From IMG/VR virus record IMGVR_UViG_3300026885_000082, positions 1 through 9,760 of that record: a stretch of 9,760 nt of DNA; one strand, written 5' to 3'. Made by a program: the position numbers and the translations under genes. The notes under the pieces are model-generated. The model was not told the origin of the DNA. It did not search any database and was given only the letters and a program-made list of their open reading frames with translations. This document shows positions 1 to 9,760 of this stretch, piece by piece. The first letter of the stretch is position 1; every line of letters starts with the position of its first letter.

Positions 1-63
1 CTAATAATAGTTGCCCTAATATTCGTTATAAGATACTTGATGAAGTCCACAGACACGTTCTAA
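1..63 (+). CDS. 3' end of a hydrophobic protein (partial, begins before the window)
   Basis: Frame 1 reads LIIVALIFVIRYLMKSTDTF then TAA (61-63), followed by a T-rich tract. Not in the ORF track. Confidence 0.55.
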   Translation, partial: LIIVALIFVIRYLMKSTDTF

Positions 64-68
64 GCTAA

Positions 69-88
69 ATTTTATTTTTTAATTTTTC
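69..88 (+). terminator. Oligo-T tract: archaeal-type terminator and/or AT-rich promoter of the next ORF
   Basis: TTTTATTTTTTAATTTTT lies just after the stop at 61-63 and about 20-30 nt before the ATG at 104. Confidence 0.4.
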
Positions 89-103
89 CTCCTATTTCTT
101 CTT

Positions 104-373
104 ATGAACATCTATAAGGGAAGAAGGAGTTGTTACTATAGAAGGGAAGGTATTTTAGTCACTCACGACTGGGAAATCCCTGACATGATAATGAGGGACC
201 TGAGGAGGGGTTATACTTACGATCATGAGTGTAACGTCATTAAGATGGATGACGACTTAGCGAAGGCCAGACTAGCGTTCCTCGAGAAGATAACAGCTGA
301 CGAATTAGCAAGGGAAAAAGCTAGGAGATATTTACACGAATTGAAAGAAGGAGAACGCGTTTTTATTTATTAG
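104..373 (+). CDS. Hypothetical protein, 89 aa, charged
   Basis: ATG-started ORF filling the space between AT-rich intergenic tracts; no family recognised. Confidence 0.7.
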   Translation: MNIYKGRRSCYYRREGILVTHDWEIPDMIMRDLRRGYTYDHECNVIKMDDDLAKARLAFLEKITADELAREKARRYLHELKEGERVFIY

Positions 374-394
374 TGTATTTATGGATTCTTTTTT

Positions 395-703
395 ATGGCA
401 CAACAGGAACAAATATCAATCGTATCCATAATAGTTATAGCCTTATTTGCGATTTTCATCTTCTCCACAATATTGCAAGGCATATTGTTTGTACTTGACC
501 CTGTTAAAGATATGGTCTCTTCTGCACCTTCTCCTCAAGTTTCATGGACTTTAGCCATTTATCAAGACCTCTATGTGGTTTATAGTTACATCTTGACAGT
601 TCTTTCAAATCAGTACGCAGTTGCCGTACTCATTGCTCTAGGTATAGTTGTAATCTCGTTAACGTATTATTGGTACTGGAGACAACAGACATACGGTGCC
701 TGA
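395..703 (+). CDS. Small two-helix membrane protein, possible virion structural or pilin-like subunit
   Basis: Two long hydrophobic segments (ISIVSIIVIALFAIFIFSTILQGILFVL; YAVAVLIALGIVVISLTYYWYW) joined by a region containing SSAPSPQVS. Confidence 0.75.
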   Translation: MAQQEQISIVSIIVIALFAIFIFSTILQGILFVLDPVKDMVSSAPSPQVSWTLAIYQDLYVVYSYILTVLSNQYAVAVLIALGIVVISLTYYWYWRQQTYGA

Positions 704-738
704 TGGCTCCCCGTCTGTAAGGCTCTTCGCCCTCTTGT

Positions 739-1110
739 TCAGATAAACATTTGATACAAGTAGTCGAATAACTTTAATAATCTAGCTTGATCCTCCTCAA
801 CTTCTTTAATTTTTTTCATCTTGTCAGCGAAGTCTCTGAAGGAAGTCGAGTTCGTGTAATAATTTAAGTCGCTCAGCGCTATGTACTTCTTTTCCATACT
901 TTTGAACTCATTACCGTTCCCACGCCATTTTATAATCGGTACTACGTAGTTTCTACCCTGCTTTTCAGGTTTAAAGAACTCAAAGCATGTATCTCCCTTA
1001 CATATCATAACGTGGTTTTCTTTTGCCTCGACTATTTGGAGTGGTTTATTATTACTCGAAACTCTGTATTTTATGTCCTTTATCGTTTTATAAGCCTCCA
1101 ATATACCCAT
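739..1110 (-). CDS. Hypothetical Lys-rich protein, 123 aa, adjacent to and divergent from the 38-bp array
   Basis: ATG-started ORF with AT-rich upstream region; no family recognised. Confidence 0.75.
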   Translation of the reverse strand: MGILEAYKTIKDIKYRVSSNNKPLQIVEAKENHVMICKGDTCFEFFKPEKQGRNYVVPIIKWRGNGNEFKSMEKKYIALSDLNYYTNSTSFRDFADKMKKIKEVEEDQARLLKLFDYLYQMFI

Positions 1111-1181
1111 AAGAAATAGTTAGAAAAGAGAGCTAAAAAATAAAAAGCCGGAAATTATTATCTAGCATTGGGTACCCCTAT

Positions 1182-1339
1182 TGCACATAAGCAAGGAGAA
1201 ACGTCAATAATTGACGACCTGCACATAAGCAACAAATAAGATCAATAAGTTATATTTTGCACGCAAGCAAGAATTCATCTTAATAATCATTTCGCTGCAC
1301 ATAAGCAACAAGATGCTTTAATAATTGTAAACATGCACA
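1182..1339 (+). repeat. Dual-repeat array with 38-bp period (TIGR-like candidate guide-RNA array): 4 full units plus a terminal partial repeat
   Basis: TGCACATAAGCAA at 1182, 1220, 1258 (variant TGCACGCAAGCAA) and 1296, partial TGCACA at 1334. Second repeat TYAATAA at 1204, 1242, 1280, 1318. All eight intervening segments are exactly 9 nt and all differ. Strand is inferred. Confidence 0.85.
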
Positions 1340-1344
1340 ATAGT

Positions 1345-1362
1345 GTTGGGGAAATCTCCAAC
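1345..1362. terminator. Hairpin between the array and the end of the convergent acyltransferase gene
   Basis: GTTGGGG-AAAT-CTCCAAC, 7-bp stem with one G.U pair. Confidence 0.4.
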
Positions 1363-1366
1363 TAAG

Positions 1367-2299
1367 CTACACTTCTATTACCCTTTTTGTTATTTCCTTT
1401 CTTCTCAGCGGAAACTCCGTAGCAATTGCAGTTAGGATGCCGTAAAGTATTCCACTTGCTCCAGAAAGTTCCTGAAAGAGTAAAGTCCACAGATAAACTC
1501 CGTAACTCACCTCTCCAAGGAAGACCGTTACACGACTAAGTACCTTAGGCGGATTTAAGATAAGAAGGGCAAAAACGGGTAACGCCAAGTTGTAAATCAG
1601 GAATCGCGTGAAGAACTCATAAGTTATCTCGTCACGTGTATTTAATGCTATGTATAGTACAAGCAGTAATCCTAATATAATATAATGTATATTGTTCGCT
1701 CTATAGCCCTTCTTCTTCAAAAGGTAAACGATTATCCCCCACCCGTACGCCCCTAACCAAAAGGGGGGCATGAAGTAAAGTAAGTGAAACTCATTGTAGG
1801 GGAGAAGAACTATAAACGCACTATATATTAACGTTGTAATGATTAGAAATGTTGCGATACGAAACTTCCATTTATCGGGAAGCTTGTGTAACATTGGTAT
1901 GATAAGATACATCCATTCTTCCAGCTGAAGAGACCAGAAGAGATATTGGAAGGAAAACGGTGTAAGAACATAGGAAACGAATGCAAAATGGAGTATCAAA
2001 TCGTAATATGTCACTCTCAGGTTGAACATGTATCTGTCGACTAAGAATACTACGATGACAGCAAGGAAATAAAGTGGCCATATCCTCTTCACTCTTCTCT
2101 TGAAATAACGAGAGAGTGAGGGGTTTTCATCGAGTCTGCTCATAAGGAGAAAAATCGATAACTCGAAGAAGAGAGGCACACCCAACCAACCAGGGCGAAA
2201 AAACGCAAGAGGGATTAACTGAAGAGTCCATAAATGATATAAAGCGACGGAAAAAGATGCGAAAAAACGTAATTGAGCTATTCGTGGATCATACTTCAT
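1367..2299 (-). CDS. Acyltransferase family 3 (OafA/YrhL-like) integral membrane O-acyltransferase
   Basis: Motifs LRFFASFSVALYH, GWLGVPLFFELS, RRVKRIWPLY, WSLQLEEWMY and LGEVSYGVYLW; multiple TM segments. ATGA overlap with the upstream gene at 2296-2299. Confidence 0.9.
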   Translation of the reverse strand: MKYDPRIAQLRFFASFSVALYHLWTLQLIPLAFFRPGWLGVPLFFELSIFLLMSRLDENPSLSRYFKRRVKRIWPLYFLAVIVVFLVDRYMFNLRVTYYDLILHFAFVSYVLTPFSFQYLFWSLQLEEWMYLIIPMLHKLPDKWKFRIATFLIITTLIYSAFIVLLPYNEFHLLYFMPPFWLGAYGWGIIVYLLKKKGYRANNIHYIILGLLLVLYIALNTRDEITYEFFTRFLIYNLALPVFALLILNPPKVLSRVTVFLGEVSYGVYLWTLLFQELSGASGILYGILTAIATEFPLRRKEITKRVIEV

Positions 2300-3021
2300 G
2301 TTGATCGCCTGGCATATATTAAGCCGATCTTCTTCTTGTTTCCTTTAATCGTAACGTTAAACCCTCTAAGTAGATCTGCAAGATGTTGAACGCCGTTATG
2401 ATATTCTACGATAATCGTATGATATCTATTAATCAGTGAAGCAGTACTAAAGAAACCATATTCACACCCTTCGCAATCGACTTTAAGTACAGATCCAGAA
2501 GGAATATTATATTTGAGTGTTATAACATCTAAATTATTTGAAAGTCCACACTCGCAACTAATTGGCTCAATAACGTCTTTTAGATTATTTTCTCCTATGT
2601 TCTTTTCTAAGTAAGTCGTGTTGACATCAAACGCATAGACTTTCTTTGCACCGTTTAACGCAAAATAAATTGGCGAATCTCCTATTCCCGCACCGACATC
2701 AACTACTGTCCTTCCTTTTACATCAACGTCGTATATACCCTCTCTGAAGATTTCCCCGAAAGCCACAAAATCATTTATATCGAAATAGAACTTTAGCACC
2801 CTGTCCATGTACCTAAATAGTATAAATCTATCAGTGACAAAAATGATGTCAAGGTCACGTAACGTTGTAAAGAAATAGGCGTGCCTTTTCGACTTTATTT
2901 CTACTTCCAATCCATTCCTTAATTTCGCTGTAAAAGGGAACCTGTTTAATGCCGTTCTGAACATTACATTTAATGGATTATCATATGCAGACATATACGC
3001 CTTAAGCATTTTGAGATTCAT
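2296..3021 (-). CDS. FkbM-family SAM-dependent methyltransferase (241 aa; start corrected to ATG 3021)
   Basis: VVDVGAGIGDS SAM-binding motif, KKVYAFD and LKVDCEGCEY. The track's extra 96 N-terminal codons are the antisense of the IS left end and tnpB. SD-like AGGTGTGA on the minus strand at 3033-3026. Confidence 0.88.
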   Translation of the reverse strand: MNLKMLKAYMSAYDNPLNVMFRTALNRFPFTAKLRNGLEVEIKSKRHAYFFTTLRDLDIIFVTDRFILFRYMDRVLKFYFDINDFVAFGEIFREGIYDVDVKGRTVVDVGAGIGDSPIYFALNGAKKVYAFDVNTTYLEKNIGENNLKDVIEPISCECGLSNNLDVITLKYNIPSGSVLKVDCEGCEYGFFSTASLINRYHTIIVEYHNGVQHLADLLRGFNVTIKGNKKKIGLIYARRST

Positions 3022-3058
3022 CTTTTCACACCTGAGATCCAGTCCGTTAGGACGGGGA

Positions 3059-3073
3059 GCTAAGTATAAATAT
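3059..3073 (+). promoter_or_regulatory. Putative TATA box for tnpB
   Basis: GCTAAGTATAAATAT just inside the left-end hairpin, about 25-30 nt upstream of SD-like GGGGATG (3096-3102). Confidence 0.5.
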
Positions 3074-3106
3074 GAATTAAAATAAAAAAAAGATTGGGGA
3101 TGTTCC

Positions 3107-4243
3107 CTGAAAGCAGAAGTTAAAGTAGCAGTACAGGGGAAGATTCTGAACCCTAACAAAGAGAAGAGACACAAACTGAACGTCGTTCTGGAGAAGTACC
3201 TAAAAGCTGTGAAATTCTTCGCTTCCTTTAAGATTAAGGATAAGAAACTTCTCCAACAGAAAGCGTACAAGGAGGCGAGAAGAAGGTTCGGTCTATCCTC
3301 CACTCTCACACAGACTGCTAGGGATAAAGCAGTAGAACTGGTTAAGGCTAATGAGGGAAGAGAGTTTCACATTCATAAAGTATCCATACGAGTGAACTAC
3401 CGTGCTTTCAAGCTCGTGAGGAGGGACACTAAATTAACACCTTATTGGTTATATCTTCAGCTGGACGGTGATGGTGTATGGTATCCAGTACAATTTGGAG
3501 AAAGACAAAGACAGATGATAGATGACGCCCTCTCTGATAACAGTGAATGGTATTTGCAACAAGTTGAACTCGTAAAGAGAGATGGAGAATGGTACGTTTA
3601 TTTCACTCTCGAAAAGCCCTTCAAGAATTATGAGCCGAAAACACCTATAGGAATAGATTTGGGTGAAAAGAACTTCGCTACAGTAATAGCACTAGTTAAC
3701 GGTAAACCGACAAAGGGTACCTTCTTCAAAGGGTCGAAAATCAAGGAAGTCAGGCACAAGTACTTCAATATCAGGAAGAAACTACAGGAAAAGAAAAGGT
3801 TGAACGTGATTAAGAGGCTGAGAGGTAAAGAGAGAAGGATCGCAAACCATGAGCTTCACGTTATCTCCAAGAAGATTGTGGAATACGCTAAACAGTTCCC
3901 TTCTCCTGTGATAGTGATGGAGAAGCTCACAGGTATTAGAGAGAACTTCAAGAAGGGTAAGAAACTCAATAGGAGGTTTCACTCCTTACCCTTCAGGAAG
4001 CTACAGAAGATGGTGGAGTACAAGGCTAAGATACAAGGAATCAAGGTGGTATACATAGACCCTAAGAATACGTCAAAAACATGCCACAGGTGTGGATATG
4101 TTACCCACGTTGAAGGAAGGGAATATCACTGTCCTAAGTGCGGTCTCAAGTACAACCGTGACCTGAACGCATCTATTAACATAGCCCGTGCCTTAATGAG
4201 AGGTACGGGTCGGGGGTACGTAAACACCCCGAAGGGGAGATGA
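3107..4243 (+). CDS. tnpB: RNA-guided endonuclease TnpB
   Basis: RuvC-I GIDLG, RuvC-II VMEKL, Zn ribbon CHRC...CPKC, RuvC-III NRDLNAS. The frame is open upstream of the track's 3209 start (LKAEVKVAVQGKILNPNKEKRHKL...), which resembles a TnpB N-terminus. The start at CTG 3107 is inferred. Confidence 0.93.
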   Translation: MKAEVKVAVQGKILNPNKEKRHKLNVVLEKYLKAVKFFASFKIKDKKLLQQKAYKEARRRFGLSSTLTQTARDKAVELVKANEGREFHIHKVSIRVNYRAFKLVRRDTKLTPYWLYLQLDGDGVWYPVQFGERQRQMIDDALSDNSEWYLQQVELVKRDGEWYVYFTLEKPFKNYEPKTPIGIDLGEKNFATVIALVNGKPTKGTFFKGSKIKEVRHKYFNIRKKLQEKKRLNVIKRLRGKERRIANHELHVISKKIVEYAKQFPSPVIVMEKLTGIRENFKKGKKLNRRFHSLPFRKLQKMVEYKAKIQGIKVVYIDPKNTSKTCHRCGYVTHVEGREYHCPKCGLKYNRDLNASINIARALMRGTGRGYVNTPKGR

Positions 4244-4325
4244 AGGTGCGTCGTGAAGACCACTGGAAACCCCAAAGCCCCGTCCGTGAGGGCGGGGTAG
4301 CTTACACCGATTCATCCCAAATCAC
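4150..4325 (+). ncRNA. Predicted TnpB omega/reRNA: scaffold to 4305, guide about 4306-4325
   Basis: TnpB guide RNAs are known to span the tnpB 3' end, the right end and flanking DNA. GC-rich stems are visible in 4190-4297. The 5' end is a guess. Confidence 0.6.
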
Positions 4326-4739
4326 TTTGTAATCCTTTAACACACTTTTTGCAGAACTTATCAACGAATTATTTACAATGTTCAACACTTCTCTCTCCTG
4401 TTCATCTATCCTTATGTATTTACTTTTTATTTTATTCATCAATGATTTACTCTCCTTGAGCGCGCTTATCAATTTCTCCTTAGCATTCCAAACGTTAAAG
4501 AGCGGGATTGTATAATCGTTAAAGTCGGAGAGCAGTATTTCGAGTGCCTTGGTTACGTATTTGACAAATTTGTCATCAACGTCTTTACCATACCTCAGAT
4601 GGAGGTCAAGTAACTCTCCCTTCAGGAAGTCCCATATTTGGTCGTCATTACGCTCACCGCTGAGCTTTGCGGTCAGTAACTGTATCAGTATCTCTTCGAC
4701 GTAACTACGTCTGTGTTGTTGTTGCTGTTGTAGACTCAA
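4302..4739 (-). CDS. Hypothetical helical protein with N-terminal poly-Q
   Basis: TTG start with SD-like GGTGAG at 4750-4745; overlaps the upstream gene; the stop codon lies in the IS right end. Confidence 0.75.
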   Translation of the reverse strand: MSLQQQQQHRRSYVEEILIQLLTAKLSGERNDDQIWDFLKGELLDLHLRYGKDVDDKFVKYVTKALEILLSDFNDYTIPLFNVWNAKEKLISALKESKSLMNKIKSKYIRIDEQEREVLNIVNNSLISSAKSVLKDYKVIWDESV

Positions 4740-5292
4740 ACAATCTCACCGCGTTTCTATTCAGAAGAAGAATAAAATAGCTTAAGTTATCTGTGACTTT
4801 TACGAAGAAGTACATGGGGGGGATCAAGAGGGGTTTTGATATGTCCACTTCAATATCGATATGGCTTGTCTCCAAAAACGTGGTGTCTGACTCTGGTAGT
4901 ATCGTTTTCCTTTTGACTTTTTTCAAGGGTAAATATTTATTTCTTACGAGACCGAAGAAAAGGAACGGTCTGCCAATGAACTGTTTCGCGATAAATGCAT
5001 AGGAAAGTTTGTTCAGGAAGTCGTCATCGAGTTTTGAAGTTTTCGTTCTCTTCATCAACTTGTCCATTTTTAGATTGACGTTGTGAATAGGTGAAGTAAG
5101 GTATGCGTATTGTCCGTACACCTTGTCGATAACTTTAGGTTTTGTAGAGTTAAGCATCTTCGGGGAAATGTGTTTATCGATCCACCATACTACATTTCTT
5201 TCGGTGTACACGGGTTTCTTTTTCTTTTTTCTCAAAAGTAAAGCGGCTGCTGTTATCCCTGCGCCTGCAGCTATTATCAGTGCTGTTTCCAT
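4705..5292 (-). CDS. Hypothetical protein with N-terminal membrane anchor followed by poly-Lys
   Basis: METALIIAAGAGITAAALLL-RKKKKK; part of an overlapping gene string. Confidence 0.75.
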   Translation of the reverse strand: METALIIAAGAGITAAALLLRKKKKKPVYTERNVVWWIDKHISPKMLNSTKPKVIDKVYGQYAYLTSPIHNVNLKMDKLMKRTKTSKLDDDFLNKLSYAFIAKQFIGRPFLFFGLVRNKYLPLKKVKRKTILPESDTTFLETSHIDIEVDISKPLLIPPMYFFVKVTDNLSYFILLLNRNAVRLFESTTATTTQT

Positions 5293-5849
5293 ATATCGTA
5301 CCCTGTCAATATCTCGTTTATCAAACGCGGTGCCTTATCAGCAGGTAAGTTCGTGTTTAAGAGATTTACTATCATAATGCTTATATTATCAACTGCAAGA
5401 TAGAAACTGTTTACTATATCAACATAGTGCTGTAAGAGCTTTAGATCCTCAGTCAACTTCTCGCTATCATCGGTATCTTTACTTATTTTGTTCATGATTT
5501 GTGTATAAACTGCGTCCTGAATAACTATCATATTTCTGATGACGTTTCTCACGGAATTTTTGAACAGAGGAAGTATAAGCGAGGGGACAGTGATGTAACG
5601 TACTTCTTGCTGTAAATCCTCAAGTAATGCAGCAATGACAGCGGACTCGAATTGTTTGAGCTTATTGATGTTGTTAATTACGTCGTCATCTTTCAACTCT
5701 TCAAGGAGGTTTATCTTTGATAAGGGCTGTTTGACCAGTTTTACGAGTCCGTGGTTCTCGTCAAAGGTGAGGGGGTTTACTTTTACTACTACGGTTTTTG
5801 CGCTTGTCCCCCTCACTCCAGTTTGTTGCTGTTGTTTTTCGTCACTCAT
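5277..5849 (-). CDS. Hypothetical alpha-helical protein (start likely ATG 5849, MSDEKQQQQ)
   Basis: SD-like GGTGAGG at 5859-5853 precedes ATG 5849; long amphipathic helical pattern. Confidence 0.75.
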   Translation of the reverse strand: MSDEKQQQQTGVRGTSAKTVVVKVNPLTFDENHGLVKLVKQPLSKINLLEELKDDDVINNINKLKQFESAVIAALLEDLQQEVRYITVPSLILPLFKNSVRNVIRNMIVIQDAVYTQIMNKISKDTDDSEKLTEDLKLLQHYVDIVNSFYLAVDNISIMIVNLLNTNLPADKAPRLINEILTGYDIWKQH

Positions 5850-6048
5850 CTTCCTCACCGTTTGTTGGGTAATACCACCTTATATAGGCATATTTACTTC
5901 TCCTCTTTTGAAAAATCTGAATTCTTGCGTTATATGATTTTGCAAGCTCTCTTACCTGATTGACGTAGTCTAAAGGCACCATAATTACGTTCTCTTTCTC
6001 CGGAGAAAACAGGGGGTTATACGCTATAATTATATCAATAACATCCAT
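5842..6048 (-). CDS. Small hypothetical protein (68 aa), first gene of the leftward operon
   Basis: ATG about 20-28 nt downstream of a minus-strand TTTTTATTA; overlaps the next gene by 8 nt. Confidence 0.65.
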   Translation of the reverse strand: MDVIDIIIAYNPLFSPEKENVIMVPLDYVNQVRELAKSYNARIQIFQKRRSKYAYIRWYYPTNGEEDE

Positions 6049-6157
6049 AGATATACGTTTCCGTGTAATAATAAAAATCTAGCATTGGGGGTTTTAGGGG
6101 GTTTCCCCCTAATAATAAAAGTTTTAAATCGAGATTATGAATTCATTACATAATGAA
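6049..6157. promoter_or_regulatory. Divergent promoter region with a central hairpin
   Basis: Minus-strand TATA-like at about 6076-6068. Plus-strand AAAAG-TTTTAAAT (6117-6129) lies about 24 nt before ATG 6153, a leaderless geometry. Perfect hairpin TAGGGGG-TTT-CCCCCTA at 6095-6111. Confidence 0.65.
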
Positions 6158-6368
6158 GGAACTTTACGCAGTTTCTAGGTATAAGAAACTACTCGGAATG
6201 CGGTGGTTAATCTTAACTGCTGAGAAGAAGAATATTGATTTGTTAGAGTCTGTCAAGGAGAAAAAATGTCCCATATGTGGTCAACAGTTTAAAAACGTGT
6301 TCTTCCTGCAAAGACATTTAGATATTACAGAATGCGGTACTGTTTTAGAAAAAACGTTAAGAGAATAA
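6153..6368 (+). CDS. Small C2H2/C2HC-type zinc-finger protein, putative transcription regulator
   Basis: CPICGQQFKNVFFLQRHLDITEC = C-x2-C-x3-F-x5-L-x2-H-x5-C; such proteins are common in crenarchaeal viruses. Confidence 0.8.
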   Translation: MKELYAVSRYKKLLGMRWLILTAEKKNIDLLESVKEKKCPICGQQFKNVFFLQRHLDITECGTVLEKTLRE

Positions 6369-6698
6369 TTCAAACGAACTCCCTTTTTTTGTGAATATTT
6401 TTATTATTAACAGAAAAGCCGATACTATCGTTATGACAAACCCTATCATGAAAAGGGGGGCAAAGGGATCGGGCTTGTAAACAGGCGTTATTATAATTGT
6501 CGAGTTGTTTATCTTTGTTTCGTTCTCACCAGCTACATATATTATGCTATTTAGGTATGAAGCGAAATTAAAGATCGTCAGAAAAATTGTAATAACAGCG
6601 TCAAGGTAAATCGGGGTGTCCTTGTTGAAGAGATAGAGTTGGAGTGCCAGTGCTATGAAGTCAATCGAAAGCGTAATAATCAACTCATTGCCTAACAC
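6357..6698 (-). CDS. Small membrane protein (about 3 TM)
   Basis: Three hydrophobic segments and a loop with N-x-S/T sequons (NET, NNS, NST). Confidence 0.75.
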   Translation of the reverse strand: MLGNELIITLSIDFIALALQLYLFNKDTPIYLDAVITIFLTIFNFASYLNSIIYVAGENETKINNSTIIITPVYKPDPFAPLFMIGFVITIVSAFLLIIKIFTKKGSSFELFS

Positions 6699-7017
6699 TT
6701 TGCATCAGCCTCTTTAACTCATCTATGTTTACTGGTAAATTAAAAAATATTCTACCATAGATGTAAATCGCCGGTGGGTAGTTCTCTCTTTCTGCGCAAT
6801 AGTTTAGCAACTTCGACACGCACATCTCCAACGTGTTATACTTCTTTTCACATATTTCCACTATCTCCTCATCATCCTCGATAAAGTACTTCAACTTTCT
6901 TGCTTGGACACCGTAGTAGCTGTAAAACCCGTTCTTCTTGTCACTAAAATAATATACTTTGCTCTTTGCTTTTCTGATAATATCGTTCACGAATTTCTCG
7001 CACATCTCACGACCCAA
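6685..7017 (-). CDS. Hypothetical protein, about 110 aa
   Basis: Overlaps neighbours on the same strand; start may be the internal ATG (MCEKF). Confidence 0.7.
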   Translation of the reverse strand: MGREMCEKFVNDIIRKAKSKVYYFSDKKNGFYSYYGVQARKLKYFIEDDEEIVEICEKKYNTLEMCVSKLLNYCAERENYPPAIYIYGRIFFNLPVNIDELKRLMQSVRQ

Positions 7018-7750
7018 GTACTACACCTCTCACATAACCGTTGTGAACGTAAATGTACAAGACGTTATCGGAAACTATGTAGGAAATATTATATCCGATC
7101 ACGGTCACGTTTCCGAAAACTGGCTGGTAAAGTATCACAGTACCATTCACGACGATACCGTTATTATAGGAAAGTTTGGTTCCCGGAGTGAGCTCGATAT
7201 ACCAACCCCACGGTAATGCCTCGTTATACTTCCCGCTGTAATACAGTACGGAAAAGTCTGGGTTGATGATAAGAGGCCTAGTTATGTTAGGTGTTACGTA
7301 AACTGGGGAGTTTACAAAATCATACCCTGAGTAGACCTGGACGAAGATCCTAGTAAAAGGCGGTATGAAGTAAAGGGGTGATGGCGCAGAGATATTGATC
7401 AGACGCCATGAGTGAGGCGGGATAACAGTCAGTGGACTATTGTAAGGTGCGTAAGCCATGATCTGACTTGAAACGACCCACCTCTTCTCACTACCGAGCA
7501 TGTAAAGGAGGAAAATAGGGTAAACCGGAGAGTTTCCGTGATTGGTAACGTTTAAGCACACTACGTCCCAGTATCCTACATCGCCGACATCGTAGACTTT
7601 CACGATGTAAACTGACAGCGGTAACGTCGGTTTCAACAATAAAGAGATTGTAAGTATTTCAAGCACGATGATACTAACCAAAAATATAATAGCAGTGGGG
7701 GTGTGGGGGTACCCCCCACTAGGGGGTACTCCCCTAAATGTCCAGTTCAT
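7007..7750 (-). CDS. Membrane-anchored, beta-rich exported (glyco)protein; start uncertain
   Basis: N-terminal TM helix, V/Y/P/N-rich sequence, several sequons (NVT, NIS, NIT, NGT). The first 20 or so codons run through a G/C hairpin cluster. Confidence 0.75.
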   Translation of the reverse strand: MNWTFRGVPPSGGYPHTPTAIIFLVSIIVLEILTISLLLKPTLPLSVYIVKVYDVGDVGYWDVVCLNVTNHGNSPVYPIFLLYMLGSEKRWVVSSQIMAYAPYNSPLTVIPPHSWRLINISAPSPLYFIPPFTRIFVQVYSGYDFVNSPVYVTPNITRPLIINPDFSVLYYSGKYNEALPWGWYIELTPGTKLSYNNGIVVNGTVILYQPVFGNVTVIGYNISYIVSDNVLYIYVHNGYVRGVVLGS

Positions 7751-8759
7751 AACTACTCACCCATACTGTTACGTAAAATAAGAAATAGTTCAAATCCCTC
7801 CAGCTCACGAGCCAGATAAAAGCCGGGAGGATCCACTTCCACTTAGTGTTAGGTTTGTACATCAACAACAACGCGATGTAGAGCGTTAGGAAGGCAACAG
7901 TATATGCGATGTGCGGTATAGGTACGCCTACCATGGTCAACAGGCTGACAGAAATACCTTGGTTCGCTATGGGTTGCGTGAGAGGACCTAATACGTCGAA
8001 AGCCCACTCTAACGAGATAAAGGGTAAATTGGGGATTAGGAAAACGGCTATCGGTATGATGATGTTCTTTGCCAGTTCTTTAGCAGTGAGGGCGTGGGGG
8101 TATTTCTCACTAAGACAATCCTTCCATATAAACGACAAGTAAAGTAACGTATATTGTTTAATGTCACCGCTCAGCGCCATAAGTGTCGTCCTAGCCCAAC
8201 CTTTTGTCGTGAGTGCCACGATTGCGATAGCTAAGGATATTATGTCAAACGCCCCACCTGTAAAAGCCGAGTAGCTCCCTTCAATCAACATGACGATGAA
8301 GAATAACTTCTCCTTACCCTTCCACCTCAGAAAGAGGTAAAGCAAGGACGTCGTGACGAGTGTAGCGATCTGAGGGTATACGACTGAGGCTATCTCGAAA
8401 TATAACGCAGGGTAACCCAACACATTAACGTAATAGGTGGGGGAGAGTGTAGCCGTGACCACGGGTTCAGCTACTGGAAACATCCTATAAGCGTTAATGA
8501 GGTTCGTTGTATAGGGATTAACCCCATGCCTAAAGAGATATGCCGCGTATAATATTAGACTTTCCTCATCGGTTTGCGAAGGAAGCCTATATACCGAGAC
8601 TGCAGTAAATGCAGCAACAAATGTAAAAAACACGATTAAATCGGCAAACCTTTTGTCATCTTTTACTAAATAGAGGAAAGTAAACACTATACCTAATATA
8701 TAAAATAGGTATATTATAGAAGAAGCTACTTCTAAGGAGAATATACCGTTGACGAACAT
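7734..8759 (-). CDS. Multi-pass membrane protein, GT-C-fold (GT87/DUF2029-like) glycosyltransferase
   Basis: Acidic TDEE in the first large loop, GVNPY, GYPALY, GGAFD and IKQY motifs, many TM segments. Confidence 0.7.
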   Translation of the reverse strand: MFVNGIFSLEVASSIIYLFYILGIVFTFLYLVKDDKRFADLIVFFTFVAAFTAVSVYRLPSQTDEESLILYAAYLFRHGVNPYTTNLINAYRMFPVAEPVVTATLSPTYYVNVLGYPALYFEIASVVYPQIATLVTTSLLYLFLRWKGKEKLFFIVMLIEGSYSAFTGGAFDIISLAIAIVALTTKGWARTTLMALSGDIKQYTLLYLSFIWKDCLSEKYPHALTAKELAKNIIIPIAVFLIPNLPFISLEWAFDVLGPLTQPIANQGISVSLLTMVGVPIPHIAYTVAFLTLYIALLLMYKPNTKWKWILPAFIWLVSWRDLNYFLFYVTVWVSSYELDI

Positions 8760-8779
8760 TAAAGCCCCTAGAAATACAG

Positions 8780-9760
8780 CTACTCTCTCAACTTCTTTAT
8801 GCAGTTCTCATCACCTCCTTTACAGTGATAAATAATTCTTTCCAAGTCACTTAGAGTATACCTCCTCGGTGTTGCTCTAATGTTGTATGCACTGAAGATG
8901 ATGTTGATCATGTCTTCGTTATACTCGTCCACGTGGAAAACTTCCTTTCCTAACACGTTCTCTCCTACCACAACAATCGGGACATTAGCAACACGAAACA
9001 GCTCTTTTATCGGTATCCCGCTCCTCTCATCTACAATGAGCACAGCGTTATACGTTTCAGCCACCTTTATCGCCTCATCCAGCCCCTTCGCGTTATAAAC
9101 GACTACGTTTCCCTTACCAACAGAGACGAAATAGGCAGCAAGTACAGGTATTCCGAGGTCTGGGTTAGCCTTCACGAAGTAGAGCTCAGGATAGTCAAGT
9201 GATGAGAAGAACCTCTCAAGCCTCCTATCCGTATAAGGTTTCTTAACGTAAATTATCCTGTAACCGCGAAGTGATTCCTCAGGCAGTCTGTCTATACCGT
9301 ATTGTAACCTTTTCAGATAGGACACTATGTTGGCGAAGTTCTGCATTGATGAGGCAAGTTTTGAGGCTAATTCTTCCCGTCTATCAAGGAATTGCGGGAA
9401 CTTCCTCTCTATGAGTATTTCTATAGCATCTTTGGTAGGCACTGGAACGTAGACTGGTTCACCGAACCTCCCTTCTCTTTTCAACGCACTGTCAATGAGA
9501 GAAGGCGAAATATTGGTTATTGCAATAAATAGTACATCACTTTCCCTCATCTTGGACATTGTATCGAGTAGCATCGACTTAATGTTAAGGTCTGCAGACG
9601 AAACACCTATTCTTTGTATTATGACTTCTCTTTGCATGAGCAACGTGTCAGCCTCGTCGATTATGAGAGCAGAAGGTCGTGATCTTACAGCTTCGTCGAT
9701 TTTTGCTTGGAAACCTTTTTCGCTTTGCCCAACATAGGGGCCTAATACTTCAGCGAAGTT
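8780..9760 (-). CDS. Classic-clade AAA ATPase (Cdc48/Vps4-like), 5'-truncated by the window edge
   Basis: The frame is open to 9760: NFAEVLGPYVGQSEKGFQAKIDEAVRSRPSALIIDEADTLL (pore loop YVG, Walker B IIDEAD), then sensor-1 AITN and SRH IDSALKREGRF. Walker A lies outside the window. Confidence 0.88.
   Translation of the reverse strand, partial: NFAEVLGPYVGQSEKGFQAKIDEAVRSRPSALIIDEADTLLMQREVIIQRIGVSSADLNIKSMLLDTMSKMRESDVLFIAITNISPSLIDSALKREGRFGEPVYVPVPTKDAIEILIERKFPQFLDRREELASKLASSMQNFANIVSYLKRLQYGIDRLPEESLRGYRIIYVKKPYTDRRLERFFSSLDYPELYFVKANPDLGIPVLAAYFVSVGKGNVVVYNAKGLDEAIKVAETYNAVLIVDERSGIPIKELFRVANVPIVVVGENVLGKEVFHVDEYNEDMINIIFSAYNIRATPRRYTLSDLERIIYHCKGGDENCIKKLRE

Follow-up and report, generated by a model that had tools for sequence, protein, structure and literature searches.

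A GC-rich palindromic repeat that behaves like a small mobile element in archaeal viruses

What is a short G-rich motif doing at several places of one viral genome fragment? The question was raised by the 9,760-nt stretch of DNA analysed here (the window; positions 1 to 9,760 of IMG/VR record IMGVR_UViG_3300026885_000082), which is a 9.76-kb fragment of a Sulfolobales virus YNP1/YNP2-like spindle virus and represents only 26% of a genome. An earlier note had recognised a recurrent TAGCA(T/G)TGGG...CCCCTA element at three sites, and had inferred from it an element-specific regulatory, recombination or replication/packaging signal that would tie a nearby repeat array into the element's own regulon. 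We found that the observation is real, whereas the interpretation is supported only in part: the element is genuine, not due to chance, specific to mobile genetic elements and linked to recombination, but its reading as a switch for this virus's own genes is not supported.

The motif is where it had been reported. ATCTAGCATTGGG is exact at 1160-1172 and 6077-6089; with up to 2 mismatches 0.18 matches are expected, and 4 of 200 shuffles gave 2 or more. TAGCAGTGGG is at 7690-7699, and the G/C palindromes following the copies, at 1170-1177, 6095-6111, 7703-7719 and 7720-7736, were confirmed. The absence of further copies had been named in advance as evidence against the note's inference; in fact, a scan for TAGCAKTGGG with up to 1 mismatch gave 4 matches against 0.66 expected, and a fourth, degenerate copy lies at 8081-8116 (TAGCAGTGAGGGCGTGGGGGTATTTCTCACTAAGAC). 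Moreover, clusters of G4+/C4+ runs number 6 in the window, against 0.69 expected and a maximum of 4 in 200 shuffles. Other details required correction. Both copies of the exact motif had been placed in divergent-type intergenic regions, but only the second lies between divergent genes; the first lies between two minus-strand ORFs (739..1110 and 1367..2299), and the third is not intergenic. The AT-rich tract described before each copy is, when read on the minus (gene) strand, a TATA-like or oligo-T tract lying downstream of the element.

The motif is the 5' end of a unit of about 30 nt with a fixed architecture: TAGCATT, G5, 3-5 nt, and then a palindrome of the form N2-3-G5-loop-C5-N2-3. The palindrome is maintained by compensatory changes; its stem flanks covary (GTG/CAC, TTA/TAA, GAA/TTC, CTG/CAG, ATG/CAT); among 54 units collected from unrelated contexts, the 2-bp stem extension is complementary in 46, against a mean of 21.3 and a maximum of 32 in 5000 permutations, with five pair types.

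How do the copies of the window compare with this unit, and are they conserved in relatives, a further point on which the note had staked its reading? Site 1 (1160..1180, plus strand) is a collapsed unit, ATC-TAGCATT-GGGTACCCC-TA, in which the first and second G-runs are merged; it lies between a 38-bp tandem array and the TATA-like tract upstream of the minus-strand ORF 739..1110. It is conserved next to the array in the relative L003 and, in degenerate form, in the relative G002, while the whole region is absent in G001 (another relative), YNP1 and YNP2. Site 2 (6080..6113, plus strand) is one type-B unit, TAGCATT-GGGGG-TTTTA-GGGGG-TTT-CCCCC-TAAT, between the divergent ORFs 5842..6048 (minus) and 6153..6368 (plus). 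The site is empty in 5 of 9 genomes (G001, G003, L004, YNP1 and YNP2), but holds one type-A unit in L003, 3-4 units in G002 and about 3 in L009; empty alleles are present in the same hot-spring samples (joint 6076->6135). A copy of TAATAATAAAA precedes the unit at 6066..6076 (plus strand) and a second follows at 6110-6120, whereas the empty allele has a single copy, so that this is either a target-site duplication or an A/T tail carried in with the element.

Site 3 (7680..7740, plus strand) is an inserted block composed of an A/T tract (7680-7689), a type-A unit (7690-7719) and a truncated type-B hairpin (7720-7736) with tail. It lies inside the overlap of two minus-strand ORFs: ORF 7734..8759, which encodes a 341-aa multi-pass membrane protein and whose stop codon is the element's CTA at 7734-7736, and ORF 7007..7750, which encodes a 247-aa protein with an N-terminal membrane anchor and reads through the element, after residue 3, as TFRGVPPSGGYPHTPTAIIF; homologues of the latter mostly match from residue 20 onward. 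Relatives with the empty site read MNWKVLVIISLIVL, whereas the window (+48 nt), G002 (+54) and L040 (+57) carry the block in frame; an empty allele is present in sample X4 (joint 7666->7741). Site 4 (8081..8116, plus strand) is a degenerate type-A unit in frame in ORF 7734..8759, where it encodes SEKYPHALTA in a hydrophilic loop. It is empty in G001, L004, L009 and YNP2; insertions are +21 nt in the window, L003 and G002, +27 in L040 and +51 (two units) in G003, and YNP1 holds an inverted unit. Site 5 (7327..7337) is a hot spot inside ORF 7007..7750 that is empty in the window but holds 1-2 units in relatives, namely metagenome contigs L253, L262, L283, L302, L337 and L352, and L009 at position 4417; contig joints 7315/7327 -> 7690 were seen in samples X1, X3 and X4. 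At the two copies of the window that lie inside ORFs, seven of seven length variants with clean sequence are multiples of 3.

Presence/absence and copy-number polymorphism was seen at eight orthologous loci, that is sites 2-5 and four loci in relatives (A-D). At orthologous sites in eight relatives the units are present or absent, single or in arrays of up to four, and once inverted. Occupancy is patchy on the tree of flanking genes: at site 3 the window is filled but its sister L003 is empty, and G002 is filled but its sister L009 is empty; at site 4 G002 is filled and L009 empty. Filled and empty alleles, and other unit junctions, coexist in samples X2-X4. Loci A, B and D are empty in 2-3 genomes each. 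At these same three loci the units start 0-21 nt after a stop codon, and at loci A-D they are followed by AATGCTA and then TTTATTTTTT or a similar tract. In all six intergenic loci the AATGCTA end faces a TATA-like tract 0-16 nt away, in the orientation of the downstream gene.

The unit is not restricted to this virus; it is shared with fuselloviruses, pRN-type plasmids and many uncharacterised contigs, and occurs in at least 94 distinct metagenomic contexts, while SMV1, ATV2 and ATSV have none. It directly abuts the tRNA-derived attP core, inside the int gene, in all ten SSV-type integrases examined (SSV1, SSV2, SSV4, SSV7, SSV-Lassen, SSV-RH, pXZ1, pSSVi and two metagenomic elements). Cell genomes carry few copies: of 401 Thermoproteota genomes 6 matched the strict pattern, and in four of these the hits lie at integrase-N/tRNA junctions or in a CRISPR array, while the other two hits look like chance; five cell genomes carrying the unit have 1-8 loose-pattern hits each. 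Five CRISPR spacers match the unit, 2 in genome G323 and 3 in metagenomes, in arrays with three different repeats.

Taken together, these data are best explained, with a confidence only somewhat better than even, by a short, non-autonomous, GC-rich hairpin repeat that spreads among mobile genetic elements of Sulfolobales and behaves like a mobile GC cluster, rather than by an operator of this virus's regulon. The analysis itself establishes the architecture of the unit and its covariation; the gain, loss, tandem duplication, truncation and inversion of units at orthologous sites of closely related viruses and within single hot-spring communities; their location between a stop codon and the next gene's TATA/oligo-T tract or in frame in tolerant parts of proteins (a loop, an N-terminal extension); the attP association; and the presence of CRISPR spacers in hosts. 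What we infer beyond this is that new copies arise by copy-and-paste of the hairpin during co-infection, sometimes together with an adjacent A/T tail, that existing insertions then spread by homologous recombination between co-circulating strains, that copy number changes by slippage at the G/C runs, and that the mobilising activity is supplied in trans by a mobile element; the SSV-type integrase is the prime suspect only because of the attP association, and the enzyme is unknown. Effects on expression, such as a 3' RNA hairpin or an insulator just upstream of TATA boxes, would be secondary.

Several data weigh against this view. No transposition event was observed, and polymorphism among metagenomic strains could also come from recombination plus deletion. 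Flanking duplications vary, being 11 bp of A/T tract at site 2, 9-10 bp of TTTATTTTT at locus D, 3-4 bp (GCTR/TAG-like) at loci A and B and none at site 4, a pattern that speaks neither clearly for nor clearly against the consistent short target-site duplication expected of mobile GC clusters. Copy number is low (0-10 per viral genome), and within-genome homogeneity of unit variants is only suggestive (p = 0.075). No candidate mobilising enzyme is encoded in the related viral genomes: no match to an SSV-type integrase was found in five of them, four of which are 98-100% complete by CheckV, and a search with PF01797 (Y1/HUH transposases) gave no match in G001-G005, host genomes not being included in this search; only an unrelated 244-aa tyrosine-recombinase-like ORF was found, with no unit nearby. 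In fuselloviruses the unit is found only beside attP, which points to a site-bound function rather than free mobility, and all intergenic copies share one orientation relative to the downstream gene, which a purely selfish element need not show.

Among the alternatives, the least unlikely, although still doubtful, is that the units are functional accessory or recognition sites of SSV-type integrase recombination, and that the dispersed copies in YNP-like viruses are secondary recombination sites, or portable homology arms, through which integrative plasmids, fuselloviruses and large spindle viruses exchange DNA. In three of the ten attP sites (SSV-Lassen, SSV7, G008) both flanks carry a unit, in inverted orientation; the unit is the only G5/C5 palindrome in SSV2 and SSV-RH, and its G4/C4 version is the only one in SSV1. 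The minimal SSV att site is undefined and, for related integrases, the strictly shared att stretch is not sufficient in vitro (PMC8371274). Moreover, the same samples hold pSSVi-like integrase/tRNA junctions joined to the window's unit (loose ends at 7688 and 7719), and site 1 borders a 3.1-kb indel relative to YNP1/YNP2. However, no tRNA-like sequence lies at any site of the window, whereas the att flanks elsewhere do have one; the window's copies have no integrase gene around them, and the five related viral genomes examined lack an SSV-type integrase. Placement at attP is itself polymorphic, left only in SSV1 and pSSVi and right only in SSV2, SSV4, pXZ1 and SSV-RH; as SSV1 and SSV2 both integrate (PMC8371274), neither flank is individually required. 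The palindrome loop of 2-4 nt is too short for a tyrosine-recombinase overlap region, and when the sites were compared with synteny breakpoints, as the note had suggested, sites 2-5 did not mark mosaic breakpoints. A more speculative and improbable possibility, not excluded by the data, is that the attP flank is the home of the unit and that these tyrosine recombinases, or a partner protein, mobilise the hairpin in trans, a REP/RAYT-like relationship built on a tyrosine recombinase; co-infecting viruses and plasmids would be seeded with portable, near-identical homology arms permitting swapping of attP cassettes and interviral recombination, while hosts answer with CRISPR spacers against the shared unit.

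The regulon reading, in which the units are operators or upstream elements that are bound by a virus-encoded regulator and coordinate a set of promoters, is very unlikely. In its favour are the palindromic and G-rich sequence, the AATGCTA end that faces a TATA-like tract in all six intergenic loci and the presence beside site 2 of ORF 6153..6368 (plus strand), which encodes a 71-aa protein with a C2H2-like zinc finger, the candidate binding protein (Pfam zf-C2H2 matches are below the curated cut-off). But orthologous promoters in close relatives lack the unit or carry 1-4 units of different type; the zinc-finger ORF is intact in YNP2, YNP1 and G003, all with an empty site 2, and YNP2 keeps it and the same promoters without any canonical unit in 34.8 kb. 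Sites 3, 4 and 5 lie inside ORFs, copies also occur in frame inside ORFs and inside integrase genes of unrelated elements, and compensatory changes in the stem flanks fit a hairpin better than base-specific protein recognition. It is also unlikely that the units are selected chiefly as RNA 3'-end modules, a stable hairpin followed by an oligo-U tract that terminates or stabilises the upstream transcript and insulates the next promoter, with mobility being incidental. The position after stop codons fits, predicted RNA hairpins are stable (-12 to -45 kcal/mol) and, after integration, the left-flank unit of SSV1 would lie just downstream of the restored tRNA gene, followed by TTTCATTTTT. Transcript ends were not examined, as the only read data were assembled DNA contigs. 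On the other hand, empty alleles keep the oligo-T/TATA tract and presumably function, archaeal termination needs only oligo-T, copies inside ORFs and in the reverse orientation cannot serve this role, and fold z-scores are unremarkable against shuffles. Chance or low-complexity coincidence, suggested by a short motif with only 2 to 4 copies in 9.8 kb, is refuted by the shuffle tests, the recurrence of the 30-nt unit and the covariation.

Comparable elements exist in other systems. The palindromic GC clusters of yeast mitochondrial DNA, for example GC42 (PMC4478555), are likewise short GC-rich palindromes in an AT-rich genome, sporadically present among close strains, with units that merge, shuffle and form tandem arrays, a palindrome under constraint, exchange by recombination at conserved flanks and an unresolved mobilising mechanism; the unit described here resides instead in archaeal viruses or plasmids, has a conserved non-palindromic 5' head (TAGCATT-G5) and a far lower copy number, shows inconsistent flanking duplications, whereas GC42 has an AG target duplication, and is strictly associated with an integrase attP. 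Bacterial REP/BIME elements, with their RAYT transposases, are also imperfect GC-rich palindromes of about 30 nt with a conserved 5' tail, clustered in tandem or inverted arrangements between a stop codon and the next promoter and variable in copy number between strains, but they are chromosomal, extragenic and number in the hundreds, whereas these units are on mobile elements, some lie in frame in ORFs, and no Y1/HUH (RAYT-like) gene was found in the related viral genomes G001-G005. Rickettsia palindromic elements are inserted in frame into genes and tolerated as extra peptide segments, but are 100-150 bp long and chromosomal, whereas these units add 7-19 residues and are shared across viruses and plasmids. 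Folded-hairpin sites of tyrosine recombinases, such as integron attC and CTX phage attP, offer a pure analogy: recognition by structure would explain both the compensatory changes and the link to a tyrosine recombinase, but attC sites are 57-141 nt with extrahelical bases, and no binding or cleavage data exist for the unit. The review of SSV-type ('suicidal') integrases of fuselloviruses and pRN-type plasmids does not describe the attP flanks as a repeat family (PMC8371274), and we found no published description of the unit.

If confirmed, this would be, as far as we could find, the first family of miniature palindromic mobile repeats described in archaeal viruses and plasmids. It would give a marker of DNA traffic between fuselloviruses, satellite plasmids and large spindle-shaped viruses in hot springs, explain small in-frame length polymorphisms in viral membrane proteins, and point to an unnoticed conserved feature right beside the attachment site of SSV-type integrases. 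One CRISPR spacer against the shared unit could hit many unrelated mobile elements, which bears on virus-host arms races; for annotation, the motif should not be read as a promoter element of this virus's regulon.

Finally, the array next to site 1, to which the note had assigned a leader, is not part of the element and is not a CRISPR-like array. It consists of four 38-bp units at 1182..1339 (plus strand; TGCACATAAGCAA-N11-TCAATAAT-N), iteron-like whole-unit tandem copies, 64-77% identical, with two conserved boxes. Nothing ties it to the hairpin unit beyond adjacency in three genomes. G002 has 8 units, YNP1 also carries it, and the same unit forms a 915-bp annotated repeat_region in Acidianus tailed spindle virus (ATSV).

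The record in which the motif was noted, 9,760 bases long and a complete IMG/VR entry, was judged to represent 26% of a genome and is about 80% identical in DNA to the Sulfolobales viruses YNP1 and YNP2. Almost all of its genes lie on the minus strand, and the recognisable products are an Acyl_transf_3 membrane protein, a methyltransferase, a TnpB (IS605 OrfB) element, a C2H2-like zinc-finger ORF and an AAA ATPase; the acyltransferase/methyltransferase block is shared with SMV1. Eight related contigs, all of them metagenomic, were retrieved for comparison and five of these were read whole, namely G001 (50 kb), G002 (37.5 kb), G003 (17.8 kb), G004 (YNP2) and G005 (YNP1).

The recurrence described in the earlier note is real. 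In fact, the 13-mer is exact at 1160 (site 1) and 6077 (site 2), its variant is found at 7690 (site 3), and a repeat search adds a fourth, degenerate copy of 32 nt at 8081 (site 4); comparison with shuffled sequences makes this unlikely by chance. The placement proposed for the copies, however, needs to be corrected, because site 1 lies between two same-strand genes, site 3 inside the overlap of two ORFs and site 4 inside a membrane-protein ORF.

In order to define the element, 54 units were collected from the window, its relatives, fuselloviruses, plasmids and cell genomes. They share one plan, composed of TAGCATT, a G5 run, 3-5 nt and then a palindrome of G5, a 2-4 nt loop and C5; since the units were collected by pattern, estimates of their identity are biased. 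There are two main types, GTG-G5...C5-CAC (type A) and TTA-G5...C5-TAA (type B), while GAA/TTC, CTG/CAG and ATG/CAT are rarer. MAFFT did not register the stems of types A and B in the same columns, so pairs were counted with a parser of our own: the two base pairs outside the G5:C5 stem are complementary in 46 of 54 units, whereas permuting the partners gives a mean of 21.3 and a maximum of 32 in 5000 trials. The palindrome itself is therefore maintained. The folding energies of the units are not exceptional against dinucleotide shuffles (z = -1.1 to -2.7), because the shuffles keep the G and C runs; covariation was the better test. The head and the first G-run are nearly invariant although they are not part of the hairpin. 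Site 1 is a collapsed unit in which the two G-runs are merged, and the second hairpin of site 3 is a type-B unit lacking 9 nt relative to the relative L040. Long variants of the type-A hairpin, which carry a conserved loop insert of about 20 nt (GTGGGGG-TGTCCGAAGGGTCTTTAAGTTT-CCCCCAC), are a further module of the family and are found in G002 (18644-18733 and 13840-13885) and in the contigs L009 (810-925) and L037 (5515-5625). Homogeneity of the TCTTA and TTTTA variants within genomes was not significant (p = 0.075).

Whether the motif is conserved in relatives had been named in advance as a test of the proposed signal, and flanking anchors were used to compare the same places across genomes. 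Site 2 is empty in five genomes (GTGTAATAATAAAAGTTTTAAAT), holds one type-B unit in the window and one type-A unit in the relative L003, and holds three to four units in G002 and L009. Site 3 is empty in seven genomes, where the ORF begins MNWKVLVIISL, while the window, G002 and L040 carry +48, +54 and +57 nt; the block at this site brought an A/T tract with it, so the mobile segment may include an A/T tail. Site 4 is empty in four genomes and carries +21, +21, +21, +27 and +51 nt in five others, and in YNP1 there is a unit in the opposite orientation. Every coding variant with clean sequence (7 of 7) is a multiple of three, whereas intergenic variants are not constrained. The site-4 insert falls in a hydrophilic loop and the site-3 insert precedes the membrane anchor.

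Four more intergenic loci in relatives (A-D) show the same pattern, with between 0 and 4 units sitting between a stop codon and the TTTATTTTTT tract of the next gene. A fifth coding hot spot, at window ~7327-7337, is empty here but filled in several contigs. The surrounding stretch at 7299-7366, inside ORF 7007..7750, gave the only match in an Rfam scan of the window, a sub-threshold one to the RAGATH-1 hammerhead (25 bits against a gathering score of 56, E = 0.93), which was taken as chance. On a tree of the flanking genes the occupied states are patchy, and sister genomes differ at sites 3 and 4. Moreover, assembled contigs of four hot-spring runs hold both filled and empty alleles of sites 2 and 3, as well as other unit-to-unit junctions. 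Flanking duplications do not follow a single rule, being 11 bp at site 2, 9-10 bp at locus D and 3-4 bp or none elsewhere, and some empty alleles keep a GCTA/AGC remnant.

The distribution of the unit outside these viruses was established mainly by pattern scans and by look-ups guided by integrase genes, because a BLAST search of the phage and plasmid collections with a three-unit cluster found nothing, probably as a result of the low-complexity filter. Scans of IMG/VR found the unit in other hot-spring contigs. A scan of genome contigs with 16 specified bases was swamped by chance hits in unrelated bacteria, and a sample of 401 Thermoproteota genomes was more informative: six had strict matches, and in four of these (G112, G233, G323 and G335) the unit sits between the end of an integrase N-fragment and a tRNA gene, or in a CRISPR array, while the matches in the other two look like chance. 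A plasmid-like contig of 5.7 kb shows the episomal form, in which a unit, a tRNA fragment and an inverted unit lie in frame inside a 401-aa integrase of the fusellovirus SSV type. In all ten SSV-type attP regions inspected (SSV1, SSV2, SSV4, SSV7, SSV-Lassen, SSV-RH, pXZ1, pSSVi and two metagenomic elements) at least one unit abuts the tRNA-derived core, although the side that is occupied varies. It is the only such palindrome in SSV1, SSV2 and SSV-RH, and SMV1, ATV2 and ATSV have none. A MITE-like model (unit, core, inverted unit) was considered, but it holds only at attP, the clusters of the window being unidirectional.

A strict pattern applied to metagenome contigs returned at least 120 stretches, with at least 94 distinct contexts, comprising att flanks, promoter-proximal sites, tandem and head-to-head arrays, coding sites and three more CRISPR spacers. 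In total, five spacers target the unit, in arrays with three different repeats (GTTAATCCTTCATGGAATTGAAAG; GTTGATCTTGGATAGAATTGAAAG; GTAGCGATCCTTTGAGGGTTTGAAAC), found on contigs L173/L185 of genome G323 and on L255, L271 and L319; one spacer spans a unit-unit junction. Literature searches for the sequence itself and for GC-rich palindromes in fuselloviruses or Sulfolobales viruses, which did not extend to subscription papers, found no description of the element.

The interpretation offered in the earlier note, which proposed a regulatory, recombination or replication/packaging signal tying the array beside site 1 into the element's own regulon, is only partly supported. The zinc-finger ORF, whose protein had been put forward for binding assays, is intact in YNP2, YNP1 and G003, all with an empty site 2, and YNP2 has no canonical unit at all. 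The array itself, at 1182-1339, is a 38-bp tandem repeat with two conserved boxes (TGCACATAAGCAA ... TCAATAAT); the same unit fills a 915-bp annotated repeat_region in Acidianus tailed spindle virus (NC_029316 9232-10146), is present in 8 copies in G002 and also occurs near the end of YNP1. It looks like an iteron or origin-type array shared by large spindle viruses, and a CRISPR-like reading of it was rejected.

Whether the sites mark synteny breakpoints, suggested beforehand as a check, was also examined. Site 1 borders a 3.1-kb accessory block (window ~1150-4300) composed of the unit, the array, the acyltransferase, the methyltransferase and the TnpB element, which is absent from YNP1 and YNP2; there, the promoter of the 123-aa ORF abuts the homologue of ORF 4302..4739. 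G001 has a different insert at the same place, and the acyltransferase/MTase part is 81% identical to SMV1. Within this block, at 3030-4300, lies a TnpB-only IS200/IS605-type element (ORF ~3098-4243) without TnpA, whose end hairpins (CCAGTCCGTTAGGACGGGG near 3041; CCCCGTCCGTGAGGGCGGGG near 4278) are unrelated to the G5/C5 unit. By contrast, a sliding identity scan at 100-nt resolution found no mosaic breakpoints at sites 2-5. No SSV-type integrase and no Y1 transposase was found in the related viral genomes. All complete YNP-like relatives do encode a conserved tyrosine-recombinase-like protein of 242-245 aa (HSLRY...GH...Y), marginal to Pfam Phage_integrase (G001 30108-30842, G002 704-1438, G004 18639-19373, G005 complement of ~20049-20774), but there is no partitioned att and no unit nearby.

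Taken together, the data fit a small, non-autonomous, hairpin-forming repeat that is copied among Sulfolobales mobile elements and is tolerated where it does little harm, that is, after stop codons and in front of TATA boxes, in protein loops and in the linker of integrases. The architecture of the unit, its covariation, its polymorphism, the preservation of reading frame, its distribution and its targeting by CRISPR rest directly on the analysis; copy-and-paste in trans, spread by homologous recombination, slippage and any effect on transcripts are instead deduced. No insertion event was seen directly, and the read data were contigs, so no RNA ends could be mapped. The nearest analogues are the GC clusters of yeast mitochondria (PMC4478555), which share the sporadic distribution, the merging of units, the constrained palindrome and the unknown mechanism; bacterial REP/BIME elements and Rickettsia palindromic elements are also close.

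The strict attP association is the main fact that the simple selfish-element model does not explain, and it motivates two alternatives: that the units serve the recombination of SSV-type integrases, which we consider unlikely, and that these integrases or a partner protein mobilise the hairpin in trans, which is more doubtful still. A review of archaeal tyrosine recombinases states that the minimal SSV att site is undefined and that for related enzymes the strictly shared stretch is insufficient in vitro (PMC8371274); a role of the flanks in integration therefore cannot be excluded.

Some contexts of the unit involve other repeats. On the metagenome contigs L244, L282 and L341 units are interspersed with another short repeat (GGCATCATATATCCGCCAT) in an unidentified element, and a second recurrent context (GTGGCTCAGAGAACCACTCCC - unit - GGGGACTTTCATTACCAAGCTCTAGTCCC) appears on seven contigs, including one of 136 kb. 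The loose pattern ATTGGGGG-N3-5-GGGGG-N2-4-CCCCC also hits giant-virus MAG contigs (L206, L208, L211 and L223) and other viral contigs (L220 and L224) that carry their own tandem G-run/G-run/C-run units, for example GGGGGGCTCAGGGGGGTTTCCCCCC repeated in L224, which may be convergence on a G-G-C run architecture, or chance.
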